NCBI GenBank assembly: GCA_965649825.1
Contig: OZ287695.1
Location: 1,911,288 to 1,975,287 of the forward strand
Direction: 5' to 3'
From: Penicillus capitatus
Taxonomy: Eukaryota; Plantae; Chlorophyta
Length of the DNA: 64,000 bases
In this document: positions 5,381 through 63,297 of the stretch, piece by piece
How the letters are laid out: each line of letters begins with the position of its first letter
How positions within the stretch are numbered: the first letter of the stretch is position 1
Program-made: the position numbers and the translations under genes
The notes under the pieces: generated by a model
The model's input: the letters and a program-made list of their open reading frames with translations, nothing else
The model's database searches: none
What the model was told of the DNA's origin: nothing

Positions 5381-6423
5381 CATCAGAGGCCATGTAGAGT
5401 GGAAAAGCAACAGAGGTGTGTGTACTCGCATGGTTCCTACAGCGGAGCATTGAAGCAGAGCTGACAATGGTTGGCTCTTTTTCTTTCGGAACGGTTTTGT
5501 TTCTTCTAAACGAGCGTTCCTATCCTAACACTTAGCTGTTTCTGTCTAGTCTTGGACTGTTTGTTCTGTCCGATCTCACTGAACTGAAGACCTTACATTT
5601 CGTTTAACATGTCGTCGTGTGGATTTGGCTGCGACAAGTCTTCGTTAATGAAGCAAGCGGAGTCTAAAACCAGGATGTGCTCTATGATTCTTTCTGGTGT
5701 TTGTCTGGTTCTTGTATGCTGAAAGAACAGAACCGAAACACAGCAGTGCCGCGAACGAAGACCAAAGGTGCTGCGGCTCCCTTGATATTCATTGCTGTGA
5801 GAAGTCATTTTTGTTCCGTTTGTTCCATTTGTTTGTCATTGACCTGTTTTCCGATTAACCATAATGGGGATGACCTAGATACTGGCGATCTGTATATAAA
5901 GAGGAACTGAGGACGGATACAATTTAGTTCGATGAAGAAGTCAACCAACCAATCACGACCAATACCCATGACATAATGAAGATGCCGTAGATCATCTCTG
6001 CCTCTCCACTGAGAACACATCGTTCTGGGACAGGGACGGCGGTAAGAACGTATCTCAGGAAAAGGATCTGATGCCAGAACCCGACACGCTGAAAAATTAC
6101 TGGCATCGATCGTTTGTACAGAAACAGTGATGCACGACGACGGTTACTCTTTGTATTCAATTGGATGAAATGCCAAAGGACTTCCAAGAGACAGTTTCTC
6201 TGACACATGGGATCTCATCTGTAGGACTTAGAATCCGTAGTTGTAGTTTCTAGCGATTCCCTGACCACCGAACGAAGGGATTTGTAAGGACTCTGGGGTT
6301 TTGCATAAATGCATCACTGTCTTGTGTAGACGCTGTGACCATTCACAACATCATGCAACACACTCTCACTCTCTTCGGCGCTCGAGATCTAAATGATCAT
6401 CATAAGACACCGAGGCCATATGG

Positions 6424-8146
6424 ATGCTCCATAGAGGGCCACAGCAATGGAAGACATACACTGTTGCCTTGTCCTGCATCTCTGTGCATCGCTGTTTCAT
6501 GTTCCATCGGCGCATGTCACTCACGACAGCTTTGTTTCAGTGTCGACGCATTGACAGCTGCGTATCGTTAATTCGTCCACGTTGTTGGATACAGACTTCT
6601 CTGCGTCTTGCGGAGACATTGTCGACGGAATTGGCGATGTCTAGAGAGACGATGCGCTACGATGGGGATAGTGGACAACGGATTCGCCAAAGACCGACAC
6701 TCTATTTCAGCGGCGGCTCCAAGTGTGTCCCACATGGGTATGCTCCGCTGTGACCCTTGGTCACTGTGATGGCGCAGAGGCCAGTTCGGAACTGGCGGTT
6801 CCGGATCTTGTCTCTGCGACGTTGAAGGTCGTACGCTATGGTGCGTCAAGAATAGACCTGGGCTGGCCGTCCAGAATGTTGTCTAAAGGGAAGGATATTT
6901 CTACCTTCAGGAGTCTGCCACAAGTAACACGGCACACTACGATGGTTTGATTCAAGGATTAGAAGCGGCGAGACAATCGGGGTTTAAGCAGCTGAGGGTG
7001 TGCAGTCATGCGCAGCTCGTGATCGAACAGATGCGGGTGGGTGTACATTCGGCTGCACTCGGCTCATCGATGCCGTGTTTAAGGGCAACTGGAAGGTGAA
7101 GAATGAAAGACTGATGGAATGGTACAATAGAGTAAGGCCATAACCGTCACCATCTACGAAGTTTCTGGCTGAGATCTTTTCATTCTAGGCACGGCAATTG
7201 ATTGATCTCTTTGATCATGTCGTCTTTGATAATATCCCGAAGGAAGAGAACCGTACGAGCACTTCACACTTGCAGAGTGTGACTGACATGTGGTGTGTGG
7301 TCTATGTTATGGAACAGTGGCAACGGGTTTGTCTGCCAAAGCAATGACGGAATACCGTACACATTCAACATGGGCACACGCATCGCACGCGTCCGGGACG
7401 CAACCGATGGAGCAGAGAGATGAAATGCCCCGAGAGAATTGCACATCTGCGCAGATAGAGCCCACTCACACACTCTACTTCGATGGCGGCGCTAGGTGCG
7501 GTACCAGTCGCACGGGCTACAGAGAGATTCGATGATGATATTGGATGCTAGAGGCAATCCAGGCCCCGGCGGCTCAGGCGCATGTCTTTACGATGCCACA
7601 GGTCGCATCGTTTGGTAAAGACGCTTCTATTGCCTCTCATTTCTCACTCTTTGCGTCGATGCAGGGAAGGATACTTCTATCAAGGCCATACAACTAACAA
7701 CATTGCCGAGTACGATGGAATGATCCAAGGTATGCGCGCCGCCTCAGATGCCGGCATCAAAACCCTCCGAGTCCGCGGCGATTCCAACCTTGCCATTCAG
7801 CAGATACAAGTCCGTCATATGCCAAACACGAACGCATCCCTTAGCAGAATCGCTCTGCCAGGGAATCTGGAAAGTGAAGAACGCCAATCTCCAGCACTAC
7901 TATCAACAAGTACTGTGATGATCATCTAACCTGTCCTTTCAAACGACAAGACCTGGCCCTAGGCGCAGCAACTGCTCGGGCACTTCGACACGATCATCTT
8001 CGAGCACATTCCGCGAGAACAGAACAGTCAGAGGAGCCCTCTATGAACTTAAGGCTTCGAAATTGATCTGTTGTGCGACAGGTGTGGCTGATGCCCTCGC
8101 GAATACTGCCATGGATTCACGCAGTACGCATGCATCGTGGCGCTGA
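6424..8146 (+). CDS. Tandem two-domain RNase HI (archaeal/plant type); N-terminal domain lacks the catalytic acids; possible organellar presequence; 11 exons
   Basis: Domain 2: LYFDGGARGNPGPGGSG, NNIAEYDGMIQG, LRVRGDSNLAIQQ, HIPREQNSVADALAN. Domain 1: LYFSGGSKGQFGTGGSG, SNTAHYDGLIQG, LRVCSHAQLVIEQ, NIPKEENLATGLSA. Start ATG uncertain. Confidence 0.88.
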
Positions 8147-8412
8147 ATGAGACACGGTGTCCAACTTCACGATGATTCTTAAACGACACGTTCATCGCAT
8201 TGTGTCTATTTTGCAGAGCTTCTTCTCTTTATCAGTCGTCGATCTTTCCAAATCTCCTCTCAGCGTTCGAAACGTCGTATACGTCTCTATTGCGGCTCAA
8301 GGTACCGACTCCAGACGGTGCGCTCTCGCGTTGTGTCCCGTTGTCTTTGGCGCCGCCATCGACCGATCCCTCTCTTCCGTGAGGCGGCACTCGAAGGCGT
8401 GTCTGTTTTCAG

Positions 8413-10195
8413 ATGCGGCGTTTTCAACTGATGTTACTATTCGGCTGCCTTTTACTAACGGCGTCGGTGCATCGCGTCATGGGAGTTGAAGAGGCGGAAG
8501 TGGAAGAGGCGGAAGATGAGTACGAAGAGGTGGAGGGCGAGGACGAAGTGCAAGAGGAGAAAGAAGGGGAAGTCGACGACAGCGATGTCGTAGTGTTGAC
8601 CGACGCTAACTTCGACGAAAAGATCGGAGCGGCGAAATTCGCTCTGGTAAACGAACAGCACTCGCGACGCATATGATACAAGCACTTGTATCTGCTGTGC
8701 AGGTCGAATTCTATGCACCCTGGTGTGGACACTGTAAAGTGAGCTCGACAATTGACTCCCTTGAACGAACGAACGGACACTTTTGCTGTGTAGAATCTCG
8801 CCCCGCATTATGCTAAGGCAGCAACCACGTTGAAGGCAGTTGATGATACCATCCTCATTGCTAAGGTCACGTCATCGGCGGCGGCAGGATTGTTGATGAA
8901 TCATGTTTTTTGTGATGTGACAGGTGGATGCGACCGAGAACAAGATTGTGTCAGAAAAGTATGGCGTCCAAGGATACCCAACACTCAAATGGTTCGTCGA
9001 CGGCAAAGACACGGAATACAATGGAGGCCGCGATGAGGAATCGATCGTGCGTTGGGTGAAGAAGAAAACTGGGCCGCCTGCTCAGACGATCAAAGAAGCA
9101 TCCGAGATCGCAGAGCTTGAAAAAACGAATGAGGTGTTTGTTGTGGGCTACTTTGCCGCTTTTGAGGGAAAAGAGTACGAGCTCTTCGTCAAGGCTGCCC
9201 GATTGGGTGAAGATGTGACCTATACCCAAACCACGTCCAAAGATGTCGCCAAAGCAGCCGGCATCACGAAAGATGCACCCGGGATCACAATCATTAAAAA
9301 TTTTGAAGGATACGAACGCGAAGTGATGGAGTTTAAAGACGAGATCGCCGTTGGCAATCTCGAGGATTTCGTGATCGCGGAGAAGATGCCTCTGATCCTG
9401 CCCTTTATTGAGAAGAACCAAGAAAAGATCTTCGAGGCAGGCATCGAGACACACGTTTTGATTCTGGCCAGCGGCGAGAACTTCAAAGCCGACGCCGAGA
9501 TGGCCAAGATATTGAGAGGAACGGCCAAGAACTTTAAAGGCAAGCTCATGTTTGTCAGCGTGGATGTCGATGACGAGACATCTTCGTCGCCGGTTCTCAA
9601 TTTCTTTGGCGTTGAGAAGAAAGACGCCCCAGTCATCTTCGGTTTCCAAATGAACAAGAACAAGAAGTTTAAGTACAGTGACGCCGTCACAGAGGAGGCT
9701 CTAAAGAAATGGGCTGGAGATCTGCTGGAGGGCAAGGTCGAGCCCATCTACAAATCTCAGGATCCACCGGAGAACGATATGGAAGATCACGTGAAGATCG
9801 TCGTCGGCAAGACAATCGATACCATCGTCAAAGATCCAACCAAAGACGTGTTGCTGGAGGTCTATGCTCCTTGGTGTGGGCATTGCAAACAGCTCGAACC
9901 CATCTATAAGAAACTCGGCAAGCGCTTCTCCTCGATCGATTCCGTCATCATCGCCAAGATGGACGGAACGGAGAATGAGCACAAAGATATCGACGTCTCT
10001 GGATTTCCGTCAATTATCTTCTTTCCAGCTGAAGAAGGGGCAGAGAAGGTGACCTATGAAGAGGGTGATCGTTCTTTGCTCAGTCTGACGAAATTCATCA
10101 AGAAGCATGCCAAGATTCCGTACGAGCTGCCTAAGAAGAAGGCGGGAGAAGGCGATACAGAACCAAAGGAACCAGATGTCAAGACGGAGCTGTGA
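8413..10195 (+). CDS. PDI: Protein disulfide isomerase, a-b-b'-a' type (4 exons)
   Basis: Signal peptide, acidic N-terminal tract, two WCGHC thioredoxin sites (first one completed by splicing), C-terminal KTEL. Confidence 0.96.
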
Positions 10196-59339: not shown

Positions 59340-62300
59340 GCGATGTGCGAGAAAGGGTTTCTTGGAAGAAGAAGAAACGAAACGGTAACGTTAGGAAGAA
59401 AATGTATCGTGAATCGTCTACGGTCCGAGCCACTGCGGAGGAAGCTGGTTGCCATGCGTTTGCGCGTGTTGATTGTCAAAAAGCAGCACCAGGGAGCCGA
59501 CTAGGATGTCGGAGCAACGGTGAGAGTGGGGCAGTTGTTGGTGTGGATGCTGGTGCTGCATCTGGTGATCGATGGCGGTCCAACGAGTTGCAAGAAGGGC
59601 GCGGTGAAAGTGAGTGGCGCGGGAATGAAGTGCGGGAGAGGTTGAGAACCGAAAGCGGTCTGTGCGGCGCTGAGTTTGGTCACCGAGTTCGGAAGCGCGT
59701 TTAGCAGTGCCTGAATCTGGGGAAGATCTGATGTCCATTTGCCTTGAGTTTTGAAGGCGGTGTGGACGGCGGATGACGTCTCGGCTGAGACGCTCGGAGG
59801 TCCCTATGCATTGTGATCACGGGATGGTGCAATCACGGGATGGTGCGGCGTTGAATTCCTCGGGCCGACATCCAATTGGATAACTGATTGCCTACGAGCG
59901 CTGAATCGTTGTCTGTCTGCAGACACTCGGGGTTGCCGAAGAGGGCTGTCCAGCGCTCGAGCAGTTTGATGATGGATGTCGCTTTGGCTTGCGAGGATGC
60001 CGAGAGAAGACAAAATCGTGTGCAGAGGTTCACTGCGGCGATGATATAGTTTGAGGAGCCGTCAGGCTTCATGGGGTCGATGACGTCCATGCCTACGCAC
60101 TGCCTCATAGGTTGCCACGTATTCAATGACTGCGCGACGGGCGAATCGTGGCGGGCAAAGTGTTGGCACTGGGGGTTGGCGTCATCGGGACATCGACCTG
60201 TCTTCAGATAGTTTTCCATCTGCAGGTACCACACTGGCCAGCAGTTGTGGTGTGCGGTGGCCGCAAGCGCGGGAGCTTCGGTCGTCGTTGGTCCTTTCCT
60301 GCAGAGAGGTTGAGGGTGTCTAGATGACACTGCACGAGGAAGCTCTGCTCGCTGCTTCGACTCGCTTGTTTGACAACGGTGGCGTCAGTGAAGATGGTGA
60401 GATGTTTGCCCATGAGCAGGTGCCTGTTTCTTCAGCGCCTCTTTCATTCCGAGTAGCTCAGCGTTGCCACTGGATCGGAACGGTTCACGTTGGAATCCGC
60501 CAGCTCGAAGGCGGAGGAGACGTTTAGAGTCACTGTCGAACAACGCGTACCCAAAGCCATCCTAGCGTCGACATACAGGTCGACATTACGGCCAGCTGCG
60601 TCAGACCGGTGATACCAGATGCGGTTGAGAGAGCGGAGGAGGGTGGCCCAGCGGTTGGGATCCTCCGCCCAGTATCGTTGGATGACTTTGGTATTGGCGT
60701 TCGTGAGGTTCGACAGGGCCGCTAAGCTGCGGCGGTCGCACTTGCAAGAGTTCAACAACGTGCGAAAGTGTCCCGAAAACGAACGGACTGGGGTCTTCGT
60801 TTGAGGCTGTGCTGCATTGAGCGTCTGCTGCAGCGGGGCCGCTAAGCTGCGGCGGAGGTCGCACTTGCAATAGTCCAGCAAGGTGCGAAGGAGTCCCGAA
60901 AACGATCGGACTGCGGTCTTCGTTGATGCGGCGCTGCAGGGGGCAACTGCTGCAGCGTGGTTTGGGGGGCAAAACGCCTTCGGGCGTGAAGCGGTGTCCG
61001 AGGAGCTCGACCTCGTTAACACCGTCCTGGCACTTCTTCGGAGATGCCGTCCACCGGTATTTGTCACAGACCGTCAGCAGTTGGAGAACTGCTCTCTCGA
61101 GATCTTCTTGTGTCCGTGCTCCTGCGGAGACGTCGTCGGCATAGCTCTCGATTGCCGTTCGAGTCTTCTGCTGCTTCAACTGGTCTCGTGCTTCCGCTAT
61201 GGTTTCTTGAACATCTTGGTCGAAGAAAGCCATTGAGTTGATCCAACCCATCGGAAGCCGTGTGAAGGCGTAGGGCTTTCGGTCGGACACGGTGACGAAA
61301 TACGGCTGGAGGCCATGTGCCAGAGGTATCTGCTAGAATCCGTGTCGGAAATCAAACTGCGCATAGTGGCGCATCCCGGACAGGTTCTGAACTGCGCCTT
61401 CTCGATGCATGGGCAGCGCGGGACTCCCTGTGGTCAGCGTGTTGAGTCCGCGAAAGTCTAGCTCCACTCGCCGCTCGAGCGAGTTCTTCTTCGGAACAGA
61501 AAACCAGGGGATGATGTGCTTCGGTTTTCCGTGAAATCGGCTGACGACTCCGGCTTCGATGAGTGCGTCGATCTCGTTTCTGCATGCCGTCGTTTCAGCA
61601 GCGAACGTGTAGGGAACTTTGGTAAAGACCGAATGTAGTTGCCCTTGTACGTCGCGAATGCCGACCTCCCATCCCGAAGAACGTCCAATTTTTCACAAAG
61701 TACGTTTGGGAATCGGGCCAGCAGCTGTTCGAGACTGCAGCAGCCAATTTTAGGCTTCGGCGACAGTATGCCTGACTGCAAGCGTACTGCCGTTTGGGAA
61801 AAGGTGGTCTGTTGCTTCTCAACGGATGTGGGTTTCCGTTGCAATCGCACGCGGTATACTCGACGTCTTGTCTTGTGGGCACGTCCAAGATCGTCGTTCT
61901 TCCAGTTATCTTCACTGGTTCCGCGGCATGGTTGGCGAGCGTTGAGAACGTGTAGTACTGCACACCGAGGTGTACCGAGAATCGCGGTGCCACGGTCGGA
62001 ACCCTCTTGTACACGAGTGCGCCGGGGAGCACGTTCGGCGTCTGAGCATCTTGCTCTCTCGTGGTCCGAGCACGATTGACCGGTTCAACGGCACCTGTAG
62101 CCGTTCTTCGGTGATTCTCGGTAGATAATCGACTTTTTCGGTGCAGCGGCATATCTTCTCATGCGCGATCTCATTGGCCGCCCTTTTGTCGGCTTTCGGT
62201 CCTGTGAGTGGCATTTGACCCGTCGCCTCTGATGCTGATAGATCTGTCGTGGGATGCGCGGAGATCTTATTGTCGATCATCGCGCGCATGCACAGTAGTA

Positions 62301-63297
62301 GATCGTAGCCGTGCCTCGGTAGTACGAGGCAACTCATGGAGAATTGTTGGTCGGAGGATTGCGCCAGGGCTGCCTGGAAGTCGCATCGTCCGGTGACCTT
62401 CGCGGTCTCTCCATGGGCCAACAGCAGACGGGTCTCGTCTGGCCTGACCTTCACTCCCAGTTCTTTCGCTCGTGCCGGGGATACAATGGAGGACTCGGCG
62501 CCAAAATCAACTAAAGCGTTAATATGGCGTGGATATCCCAAATGGCTCGGGGAGATGAGACCCAGTTTTAAAACTCTCCTGGTCTTGGTGACCGCTCTAA
62601 CGGTGTGTGCGAACTGCACATCCTGTTCCGTTGGGTCTTCTTCTGTCTCGCTAATGGTCTCGCAGACGTGTGCTTCGTTTCCTTTCGGCAGAGACTTCTC
62701 TGCGGCGAAGGCACGACGCCCATTCCATTCCTCGACTGGCCTGCTGCTCTTCGTGGCCTTGTCGATGCATTGCTCGAATTGTTGATCTTTTGTAAGAACT
62801 TCAGCATGTTGAGCGCCTCTCGTCTAGAGGTTCTGCAGATTTCCCTGGCTCCGATCATGACGCTTCCAGCGTTAGAGATCGCTGAAAAGTTGATCGAGCC
62901 GTCGTTGCCGATCACTCTTCCGTCGGCGGCAAAGTTGACCAATGGCGTCGTCGCCACATCGGGGTCAATGGGATCATGATCTGCGTCCGTTCGCGTCAAC
63001 ATGCTCGACTCCCAGAAGCTAGCGTTCTTGAGGACAGTGGTCATGTCCTCAGTTTTGAGGCGCAGAACCTCGTCGGCAAAAATAGTGCAAACTATGGCCG
63101 CGGGTCCGGCAAAAGGCCTCATTGAATGCTGCCTGCGTTCGAAAGCGCGGTCCGACTCGCTCGAGGACCCGCTGTATCAGATCGAAGGCAGGCGATCTGG
63201 GCTCCACACTTTGAACCACGTACTTAATCCGAGGGCGGTAATCGTCCTCGACGAAGGCTGCCGAGTTGAGAAGGGACGTGAACTCCTCACAGTCCAT
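59340..63297 (-). pseudogene. Disrupted gag-pol
   Basis: gag ATG 63297; protease ALVDFGAESSIV (62506); RT LDFRGLN, RLPMGWINS, YADD (61132-61143); integrase VGMDVIDP, QTDND, SERL and WLGP*. In-frame stops at 62872, 62824, 61333 and 59418, plus several frameshifts. Confidence 0.93.
60716..60950. repeat. Diverged 120-bp tandem duplication inside RT
   Basis: ggccgctaagctgcggcgg recurs at 60717 and 60837; it encodes TKTAVRSFSG and TKTPVRSFSG. Confidence 0.9.

Follow-up and report, generated by a model that had tools for sequence, protein, structure and literature searches.

A predicted archaeal-type RNase H1 of a bryopsidalean green alga with a putatively inactive, duplicated N-terminal RNase H fold

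Why does an RNase H gene of a green alga encode two RNase H folds in tandem, of which only the second keeps the catalytic acids, and what could the first fold do for its live partner? The gene was found in a window of 64,000 nucleotides from Penicillus capitatus, which is the whole stretch of DNA analysed here. The gene is nuclear, comes from a green alga of ulvophycean (Bryopsidales-like) type, and is a member of the plant/archaeal-type RNase H1 family.

Gene model and domain layout

The RNase H gene was rebuilt with 11 exons (Table 1), giving a predicted protein of 394 amino acids. The model was built manually with the reading frame held to the stop codon at 8144-8146, and both splicing and start are predicted. 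Candidate in-frame start Met codons are at 6424 (Met1), codons 26 and 31, and 6637 (Met72). Ten introns of 40-65 nt were identified, each of them GT-AG, and an RNase H profile was matched by the exon pieces in the order predicted by the gene model. From N to C terminus, the predicted protein would consist of a basic extension, a dead RNase H fold (D1), a linker and a live archaeal-type RNase H (D2).

Table 1. Positions of the RNase H gene, its predicted domains and the neighbouring gene in the window
Feature	Positions	Strand	Basis or remark
Whole gene (CDS span)	6424..8146	+	manual model; exons and splice sites all kept in the related species L003
Exons 1-6	6424-6722, 6778-6840, 6889-7036, 7084-7131, 7189-7252, 7318-7495	+	
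Exons 7-11	7552-7614, 7665-7809, 7862-7909, 7963-8026, 8082-8146	+	
N-terminal extension, aa 1-71, possible organelle-targeting presequence	6424..6636	+	open frame, basic
D1, putative pseudo-RNase H, aa 88-217 (exon 1 end to exon 6 start)	6685..7346	+	RVT_3 and PDB 3hst matches
Inter-domain linker, aa 218-254	7347..7457	+	inside exon 6; open frame in window and L003; dN/dS 0.32
D2, archaeal-type RNase HI, aa 255-385	7458..8116	+	RVT_3, PF00075 and PDB matches
Neighbouring protein disulfide isomerase (PDI) gene	8400..10195	+	5' limit approximate; main exon = ORF 8924-10195

The donor of intron 1 (AA/GTGTGT at 6723) was conserved between the two D1-bearing species. A donor at 6738, used in the first gene model and adding C-V-P-H-G, was dropped because the 6723 donor restores the intron position of D2 and because the GT at 6738 is missing in L003. 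With the 6723 donor, F-S-G-G-S-K/G-Q-F-G of D1 aligns exactly with F-D-G-G-A-R/G-N-P-G of D2. The original prediction that frame and splice sites of D1 are intact holds in L003, where all are kept, with the exception of this one donor, which it had placed at 6738. Exon 6, stop-free in both the window and L003, extends from the final D1 helix across the linker, where two Met residues are kept in both species, into the first strand of D2, and a two-gene model was ruled out by this bridge.

The RVT_3 family (PF13456) was found twice in the protein by Pfam (E 6.7e-49), as expected from the two tandem folds that had been predicted here. D2 matched RVT_3 with E 6e-30 and RNase_H (PF00075) with E 1.4e-9, and its best structural matches were 4e19 (4.5e-27) and 3hst (6.4e-27) in PDB. 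All four predicted acids were present in D2, namely Asp263 (7482-7484), Glu303 (7708-7710), Asp327 (7780-7782) and Asp377 (8090-8092), and 37 of the 40 conserved columns were retained. Halobacterium RNase HI, the N-terminal domain of Rv2228c and LC11 are examples of archaeal-type type 1 RNase H (RVT_3), a class of enzymes that use metal to cut the RNA strand in RNA:DNA hybrids. By the fold and the D-E-D-D site of D2 the predicted protein belongs to this group, with D1 as a putative pseudo-enzyme copy.

D1 by itself also matched RVT_3 (E 1.1e-18) and the solved archaeal-type RNases HI 3hst (5e-15), 4h8k (3e-14) and 4e19 (4e-13). At the four acid positions it carries Ser96 (6709-6711), His137 (6935-6937), His161 (7007-7009) and Thr210 (7323-7325), that is S-H-H-T, while the tetrad is D-E-D-D in 115 of 122 related domains. 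The predicted loss of all acids was thus confirmed, with one correction, since the third position is the His of C-S-H-A-Q and not the Ser. D1 retains 22 of the 40 family-conserved columns. It keeps the G-x-W-K-V-K-N motif and, within T-N-N, both the Thr and the second Asn. Besides the acids, D1 has lost the G-N-P-G loop, the first of the two Asn in T-N-N, the Ser that follows the third Asp and the A-D-A-L-A-N helix. These lost motifs line the canonical substrate groove, therefore any binding by D1 cannot be quite canonical.

The N-terminal 71 amino acids have a net charge of +7 and 20% Ser+Thr, and no family was found for them by Pfam. Their frame is open in the window and in L003, and an open frame survives in only 3.6% of shuffles; dN/dS between both species is 0.83, which is nearly neutral. 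Such a basic, open and fast-evolving stretch is compatible with a transit peptide.

A Cauli_VI/hybrid-binding domain (HBD, PF01693) gave no match at E<=1 in a Pfam search of the 394-aa protein. A profile made from 38 HBD-bearing relatives found none in the six-frame translation of the entire window (best E 1.1) or of L003, a search that very short exons could escape. The predicted absence of an HBD thus stands, and the 394-aa predicted protein falls outside the eukaryotic/plant RNase H1 architecture of HBD plus catalytic domain.

Origin and maintenance of D1

D1 shares 48% identity with D2 (E 1e-47), and their exon blocks have the same phases, with 63/148/48/64 nt in D1 and 63/145/48/64 nt in D2. 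Outside its own protein, the best matches of D1 were live domains of at most 42% identity. D1 and D2 were monophyletic in 79% and 64% of bootstraps in two analyses, which used neighbour-joining trees with a custom distance routine on the 122 related domains collected. Synonymous sites between D1 and D2 were saturated (pS 0.82), ruling out recent gene conversion, while dS between the window and the related species was 0.3-0.6, which means that the retention of D1 goes back far beyond the split between the species. In the gene as modelled, these comparisons show an origin of D1 by old internal tandem duplication of an exon block.

The duplicated unit was the five-exon block of the catalytic domain. 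D2, the C-terminal copy, kept the D-E-D-D site and is the predicted nuclease. The N-terminal copy passed through an early burst of change, which stripped all four acids together with a large part of the catalytic face, and purifying selection has since held it as a folded pseudo-enzyme domain. In tree distances, the stem branch of D1 was about 2-4 times that of D2, and only 1.4 times after the species split.

The locus of the related species (L003) is syntenic with 83% nucleotide identity, and has the same two-domain gene with S-H-H-M at the D1 tetrad. D1 is 81% identical between both species, with the fourth acid position varying (Thr/Met), and the sole indel in the D1 exons of L003 is one in-frame codon. 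The dN/dS ratio was 0.16 for D1 (bootstrap 0.08-0.28) and 0.18 for D2. A decaying duplicate or pseudogene was rejected on the D1 ratio and on the frame and splice sites kept in L003, and the original prediction, which had named dN/dS as a check on whether D1 is preserved, was borne out. These data support D1 as a preserved, catalytically dead duplicate fused to a live domain in one predicted polypeptide.

The PDI gene, a feature outside the RNase H gene, served by its large exon as the synteny anchor for orthologous loci. ORF 8924-10195 matched PDI at 90% (L003), 64% (L005) and 56-66% (Caulerpa, Bryopsis). The RNase H gene lies directly upstream of PDI in L003, L004 and L005, of which L004 is from the window's own species (99.94% identity) and adds no comparative power, and host-gene synteny is common to four species. 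In L005, a third and more distant species, the syntenic locus encodes an N-terminal extension and a single live domain, with neither D1 nor HBD, and its intron positions and exon lengths (63/145/48/64) are as in the window gene. Caulerpa lentillifera g2668.t1 (P0004), which adjoins a PDI gene, also has a single live domain and no HBD. Thus the immediate ancestor was already without HBD, and D1 was added, not substituted. D1 had been described as standing where an HBD would be expected, and this part of the original prediction was not sustained. The same architecture in relatives, which had also been looked for, was found in L003 and in diatom analogues that are not orthologous, while L005 and Caulerpa are single-domain.

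Close orthologues of the spliced protein were not found in a protein-database search, as a genome with exons this short is represented there by ORF fragments only. A scan of metagenomes with D1 exon 3 gave 67 pattern matches, none of which was confirmed.

Remnants of LTR retroelements were observed at 60.4-62.6 kb of the window, away from the gene. Such remnants, together with a gene model known from genomic sequence alone, could favour an artefact, in which two neighbouring genes, a duplicate decayed to a pseudogene or part of a retroelement had been read as one gene. This is highly improbable, considering the single open exon that bridges D1 and D2 in two species, the low dN/dS of D1, the ten introns that are all GT-AG in the second species and the host-gene synteny. 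In addition, neither reverse transcriptase (RT) nor integrase was found beside the gene, nor any further archaeal-type RNase H domain in the 64-kb window. A retroelement origin was rejected on the absence of an adjacent RT or integrase, the 10 spliceosomal-type introns and the conserved host synteny.

Possible roles of D1

We infer that D1 most likely serves as a non-catalytic module for substrate binding or positioning. D1 would act in cis on behalf of D2 by binding or positioning nucleic acid; the gain would be higher affinity or processivity, or a defined cleavage register on RNA:DNA hybrids. This role is modelled on the retroviral tether/connection fold and on the HBD of other eukaryotic RNase H1s. 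An organelle is a possible site of action of the protein. The predicted pI is 8.5 for D1 and 5.6 for D2, and a basic D1 fits a binding role; the retained motifs, the absent HBD, the recurrence of a dead N-terminal before a live C-terminal fold and the tether precedent also bear on it. Against it, the nearest orthologues manage without D1 and without HBD, therefore a binding module is not strictly required. For the whole account, with an old duplication, D2 as nuclease, D1 as in-cis binding or positioning module and a possible organelle location, our confidence is evenly balanced.

Purifying selection on D1 may also stem from a role in protein-protein contacts or from selection against misfolding. 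In the first case, D1 would be a protein-protein or regulatory module without nucleic-acid binding, which might pair within the molecule as a pseudo-dimer, auto-inhibit the enzyme or dock proteins of the nucleoid or replisome. A catalytic and substrate face wholly remodelled around a kept core, the selection on D1 and the single-domain orthologues, which need no added binding module, would agree with this. It is nevertheless unlikely, as D1 is basic and D2 acidic, no partner is known, and degenerate RNase H folds beside live ones contact the substrate in every known precedent (PMC10508981).

In the second case, D1 would be an inert relic adding no function, kept folded only since misfolding would harm D2 or the cell. 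It ranks next in probability, also on the unlikely side. In its favour, the nearest orthologues lack D1, and the function of D1 is a putative one. But its dN/dS equals that of the live domain, a constraint tighter than a passive spacer should show. D1 has moreover survived since a duplication so ancient that synonymous sites are saturated, though simple exon loss would have removed it, and the dead-N/live-C order evolved repeatedly.

D1 might otherwise have evolved into a sensor or into another enzyme by gaining a new site for a ligand or metal, with His137, His161 and Cys159 (same face, strand 4) and Ser96 as candidate residues. Two of the four acids were changed into His and a Cys lies two residues before His161, all kept in both species, but D1 is known in these two species only, giving little statistical power for residue-level conservation, and at 81% identity these residues would be shared by default. 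The fourth acid position varies, and this option is quite improbable. A binding or positioning module remains the preferred reading of D1.

Comparison with known RNase H systems

D2 is the same RVT_3 catalytic domain, with D-E-D-D, as in green-lineage RNase H1 of the AtRNH1A/B/C type and in Bryopsis sp. BSKO_03953 (P0002), with 52-58% identity to the latter and roughly 50% to RNH1-like proteins of Linum. An N-terminal extension is likewise shared with the organellar (RNH1B/C-like) isoforms of plant RNase H1. Plant and Bryopsis enzymes combine an HBD with one catalytic domain, whereas the window protein has no HBD and an extra dead fold. The HBD was seen only in the farther homologues, namely Bryopsis P0002, 38 of 120 relatives and plant RNH1s, in which it is N-terminal (10.1101/662080). 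The single-domain orthologues of L005 and Caulerpa resemble the window locus in their PDI-adjacent position, live domain and lack of HBD, but they have one domain, while a second copy was inserted and inactivated in the window lineage.

A dead N-terminal and live C-terminal tandem was present in 85 of the top 152 proteins of a library search, mostly in a diatom SAP-psiRNH-RNH family (P0003 family; Thalassiosira, Chaetoceros, Seminavis, Cylindrotheca), which is annotated merely as "ribonuclease HI". Like the window protein, this family is cellular, with a live archaeal-type C-terminal RNase H and a basic D1 (pI 9.6 for D1 and 6.3 for D2, the same polarity). It differs in having a SAP domain and K-E-D-x in D1, a tetrad that lacks no more than the first and the last acid, compared with S-H-H-T and no SAP in the window protein. 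Orthology was rejected, since the window D1 is closest to its own D2 and not to diatom D1, and no SAP was found by Pfam. Median D1-D2 identity was about 30% over all retrieved tandem proteins, mostly of the diatom family, and comparison of the tandem proteins indicated that the dead-N/live-C order arose repeatedly.

In the AF2 model of diatom P0003, D1 holds the RNase H topology with pLDDT above 90. With this model as proxy for the window D1-D2, Foldseek gave a serial alignment to the connection and RNase H domains of foamy-virus, MLV and HIV-1 RT, at an rmsd of 16-20 A. No published description of the diatom family was found in a limited literature search, in which queries on cellular tandem, pseudo- or inactive RNase H gave only retroviral RT, UvrC and unrelated topics.

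Pseudo-enzyme domains that serve live twins are a recurring theme. The alga gene and the diatom family suggest a general design principle for HBD-less RNase H1 enzymes. Tentatively, and with less confidence than in the account of D1 itself, it may be proposed that cellular RNase H1s gained a dead N-terminal RNase H fold at least three times independently (in diatoms, this bryopsidalean lineage and the P0336 lineage), converging on the retroviral "tether plus RNase H", and that the pseudo-domain is a general device, not described so far, that can take the place of an HBD in holding or positioning RNA:DNA hybrids (R-loops). If so, the alga and its single-domain close relatives would form a natural before-and-after experiment on the origin of such a module, in which the ancestral state persists at the same locus and selection on the dead copy can be measured. 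D2, D1-D2 and the single-domain orthologue would be tractable proteins for the contribution of the dead fold to R-loop processing.

To our knowledge, the only studied case of a dead RNase H twin is the tether of retroviruses or LTR elements. In the dual RNase H of retroviruses and of Tat, Chronos and Archon LTR elements, an acid-less N-terminal fold is followed by a live D-E-D-D domain, as in the window protein. The live domain of plant and oomycete dual-RNase H elements is also archaeal-type (PMC10508981; PMC4408406). The retroviral tether has lost catalysis and kept the RNase H fold and substrate-binding capacity, and a tuning effect on the active RNase H has been proposed for it (PMC10508981). 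In these retroelements the two folds are of different origin, a native and an acquired RNase H within a Pol polyprotein, whereas D1 and D2 of the window gene are sister copies within a host gene that is syntenic, rich in introns and free of RT. A layout like that of the retroviral tether is thus found in a host gene, where its origin can be read as an exact exon-block duplication.

Gene model and domain identity

Three-frame reading of window positions 5800-9000 gave an RNase H gene of 11 exons (Table), with a coding product of 394 aa and very short introns (40-65 nt), all ten of which were bounded by GT-AG. In Pfam the family of archaeal-type RNase H domains (RVT_3, PF13456) matched this protein twice (E 6.7e-49). 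The C-terminal domain (D2, aa 255-385) matched Halobacterium RNase HI (4e19, 4.5e-27), Rv2228c-N (3hst) and LC11 (3u3g). D1, which is N-terminal (aa 88-217), still matched RVT_3 (1.1e-18), 3hst (5.4e-15) and 4h8k (2.9e-14) when used alone as the query, and was 48% identical to D2 (E 1e-47). On this sequence evidence D1 clearly shares the fold of D2, and the tandem arrangement seen in the original prediction was confirmed and strengthened.

The D-E-D-D tetrad was present in 115 of 122 aligned related domains; in this alignment D2 carried D263/E303/D327/D377, and the corresponding positions of D1 were S96/H137/H161/T210. The codons proposed for the D1 Ser (6709) and the D2 Asp (7482) were correct, and D1 lacked all four acids while D2 kept them, as had been claimed; the aligned residue of the third Asp had to be corrected, to the His of CSHAQ. 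Two-metal catalysis is not possible in D1.

The exon pieces matched the domain profile in exactly the expected order, and no other match to this profile was found elsewhere in the 64 kb window. Exon 6 spanned the final helix of D1, the linker and the first strand of D2 and was free of stops, so a single polypeptide would be made unless splicing is quite unlike the sequence prediction; that the joined gene is an artefact of our own model is highly improbable. The D1 splice sites had been described as intact, which held for every GT-AG in a related species (locus L003), while the donor of intron 1 was 6723 instead of 6738. Both GT donors are in frame in the window, 15 nt apart, and the upstream one is conserved, being the only one present in the L003 species. 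With the 6738 donor the protein would gain C-V-P-H-G, possibly through alternative splicing specific to this species. In the linker (window 7370-7400, aa ~226-234), two Met codons were kept in both species (QPMEQRDEMP / QQMDQRDAMP), and an internal start there could conceivably give a D2-only isoform.

Table. Coordinates of features in the window
Feature	Position	Strand	Note
RNase H gene, exon 1	6424-6722	+	own model
RNase H gene, exon 2	6778-6840	+	own model
RNase H gene, exon 3	6889-7036	+	own model
RNase H gene, exon 4	7084-7131	+	own model
RNase H gene, exon 5	7189-7252	+	own model
RNase H gene, exon 6	7318-7495	+	own model
RNase H gene, exon 7	7552-7614	+	own model
RNase H gene, exon 8	7665-7809	+	own model
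RNase H gene, exon 9	7862-7909	+	own model
RNase H gene, exon 10	7963-8026	+	own model
RNase H gene, exon 11	8082-8146	+	own model
D1 His137	6935-6937	+
D1 Cys159 to His161	7001-7009	+
PDI exon	8924-10195	+	synteny anchor
LTR-retroelement remnants	60400-62620	minus	overlapping broken frames
RVT_1 fragment	60601-61290	minus	E 9e-10
Aspartyl protease	61912-62619	minus	E 4e-7

The retroelement remnants at 60.4-62.6 kb were unrelated to the RNase H gene.

Orthologous loci and the origin of D1

Orthologous loci were located through an exon of the downstream protein disulfide isomerase (PDI) gene, which covers 8400-10195 with an approximate 5' limit. This exon was 56% identical in Bryopsis, 57% in Ostreobium and 56-66% in Caulerpa, and it puts the window in a green alga close to Bryopsidales. 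One locus (L004, ENA ERZ25074695) was of the same species as the window (99.94% identical). L003 (ENA ERZ26696514; 83% nucleotide identity over 3.4 kb) had the same 11 exons and a product of 405 aa, with S-H-H-M at the tetrad positions of D1. In a third locus (L005, Logan SRR33785045; PDI 64% identical) the RNase H gene immediately upstream of PDI encoded an N-terminal extension and a single live D-E-D-D domain (exon lengths 63/145/48/64), with neither D1 nor a hybrid-binding domain (HBD). Caulerpa lentillifera g2668.t1, adjoining PDI g2667.t1, was likewise single-domain and without HBD. The two-domain architecture was found in L003 and was absent from L005 and C. lentillifera, and RNase H-PDI adjacency was kept in four species. 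The adjacent Caulerpa PDI, g2667 (56% identical), is a more distant paralogue than g4678 (66%), therefore the history of the locus includes PDI duplication or loss.

The exon lengths of D1 (63/148/48/64 nt) and D2 (63/145/48/64 nt) corresponded, and the intron phases were identical in both blocks (2, 2, 0, 0, 1); the gene is the product of an exon-block duplication. D1 and D2 clustered in neighbour-joining (NJ) trees with 79% bootstrap without L005 and 64% with it, the L005 domain being sister to both, and the alternative grouping of D2 with L005 received 1%. The best matches of D1 outside its own protein were live domains of at most 42% identity. The NJ placement and the single-domain L005 gene together date the duplication after the split of the L005 lineage and before that of the window and L003 species.

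Plant RNH1s are defined by HBD and D-E-D-D (10.1101/662080). No Cauli_VI (HBD) match was obtained on the 394-aa protein in Pfam at E<=1, as predicted. That D1 stands where an HBD would be expected was right for the wider family (38 of the 120 relatives carry an HBD, among them Bryopsis P0002, the nearest relative with a name) and not for the syntenic genes: these are single-domain without HBD, so the immediate ancestor had lost, or never had, an HBD, and D1 is therefore an addition instead of a replacement. The N-terminal extension, which may be an organelle-targeting presequence, is basic (net +7, few acidic residues) and evolves nearly neutrally. Its frame is open in the window and L003 species, against 3.6% of shuffled sequences, and its start codon is one of several candidates.

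Selection and residue changes in D1

By the Nei-Gojobori method, window against L003 with bootstrap 95% ranges, dN/dS was 0.16 (0.08-0.28) for D1, 0.18 (0.09-0.35) for D2, 0.32 (0.12-1.06) for the linker and 0.83 (0.43-1.72) for the N-terminal extension. Selection on the dead copy is clear, and its predicted preservation was borne out. Between the two species the only indel in the D1 exons was one in-frame codon, and the D1 introns had many gaps. Synonymous sites between D1 and D2 were saturated (pS 0.82) against a species dS of 0.3-0.6, thus D1 has been retained several times longer than the two species have been separate, and recent gene conversion between the domains is excluded. On NJ distances the stem branch of D1 was ~2-4 times the length of that of D2, and since the species split only 1.4 times, a pattern that reads as an early burst followed by constraint. 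In addition, dS in D1 (0.59) was about twice that in D2 (0.32) of the same gene (window 6685-8116 against L003), for which small sample, codon bias or a local rate difference are candidate causes.

Among the most conserved family columns (n=40), D1 retained 22-23 and D2 35-37. The losses of D1 were concentrated on the catalytic and substrate face: besides all four acids, they took in the loop G-N-P-G, the leading Asn of T-N-N, the Ser that follows Asp3, the H-x-P-R-E His and the helix A-D-A-L-A-N. D1 retained its core and G-x-W-K-V-K-N and, within T-N-N, the Thr and the second Asn; these two residues are part of the DNA phosphate-binding pocket in RNase H-hybrid structures. D1 is basic (pI 8.5) versus the acidic D2 (5.6). 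Two of the four lost acids have become His, and Cys159, two positions ahead of His161, sits on the same face of the strand. His137, Cys159 and His161 could form a new metal or redox site, as compared in only two species, yet a new ligand site as the role of D1 is improbable.

Proposed role and the same layout elsewhere

D2 would be the nuclease, because its catalytic motifs are intact. Selection preserves D1 as a folded, basic domain tethered ~37 residues upstream, and the best-supported reading of it is a predicted cis-acting module which binds or positions substrate for D2, with a precedent in the dual RNase H of retroviruses and LTR elements. Against binding, the canonical groove residues are largely gone from D1, and the nearest orthologues function without D1 and without HBD. 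D1 might instead be a protein-protein or regulatory module, which is possible but rather unlikely; an inert relic constrained by its fold only is slightly less likely again. The earlier interpretation of D1 as a binding or regulatory module was partly supported.

Two tandem proteins were combined into a profile, which retrieved 420 of 1.84 billion representative proteins at E<=1e-30. Composition was read for the top 152: dead-N/live-C in 85, a single live domain in 27, and dead-live-dead, live-dead, live-live and other layouts in 10 each. The dead-N/live-C layout is not unique to the window gene. Most such proteins belonged to a large diatom family of SAP, psiRNH (K-E-D-x) and RNH (P0003 family; locus L001, proteins P0247-P0469). 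Its members come from Thalassiosira, Chaetoceros, Seminavis and Cylindrotheca and bear no annotation beyond 'ribonuclease HI'. A separate tandem protein (P0336, 344 aa) had H-Q-S-D plus D-E-D-D, with copies very similar by eye and a D1-D2 identity outside the top 20 listed; it is seemingly a further, younger independent event of duplication and inactivation of the N-terminal copy. In the library of papers searched, no description of cellular dead-plus-live RNase H tandems, including the diatom family, was found.

Modelled with AF2, diatom protein P0003 showed the full RNase H topology in its D1 (pLDDT >90; overall pTM 0.70), and its single domains matched Halobacterium RNase HI in Foldseek (TM 0.94), this being a diatom proxy for the window protein. 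The duplication origin is unusually clean and datable. Recurrence of the layout and the retroviral precedent lower the surprise; the question is made testable by the convergence and by a set of species from before and after the duplication. Through internal duplication, a host gene of the RNase H1 family has arrived independently at the 'tether plus RNase H' layout. In Foldseek the connection and RNase H region of retroviral RTs aligned serially but loosely with both domains of the P0003 proxy (rmsd 16-20 A), and the dual RNase H of retroviruses and LTR elements has the same layout as the window gene.
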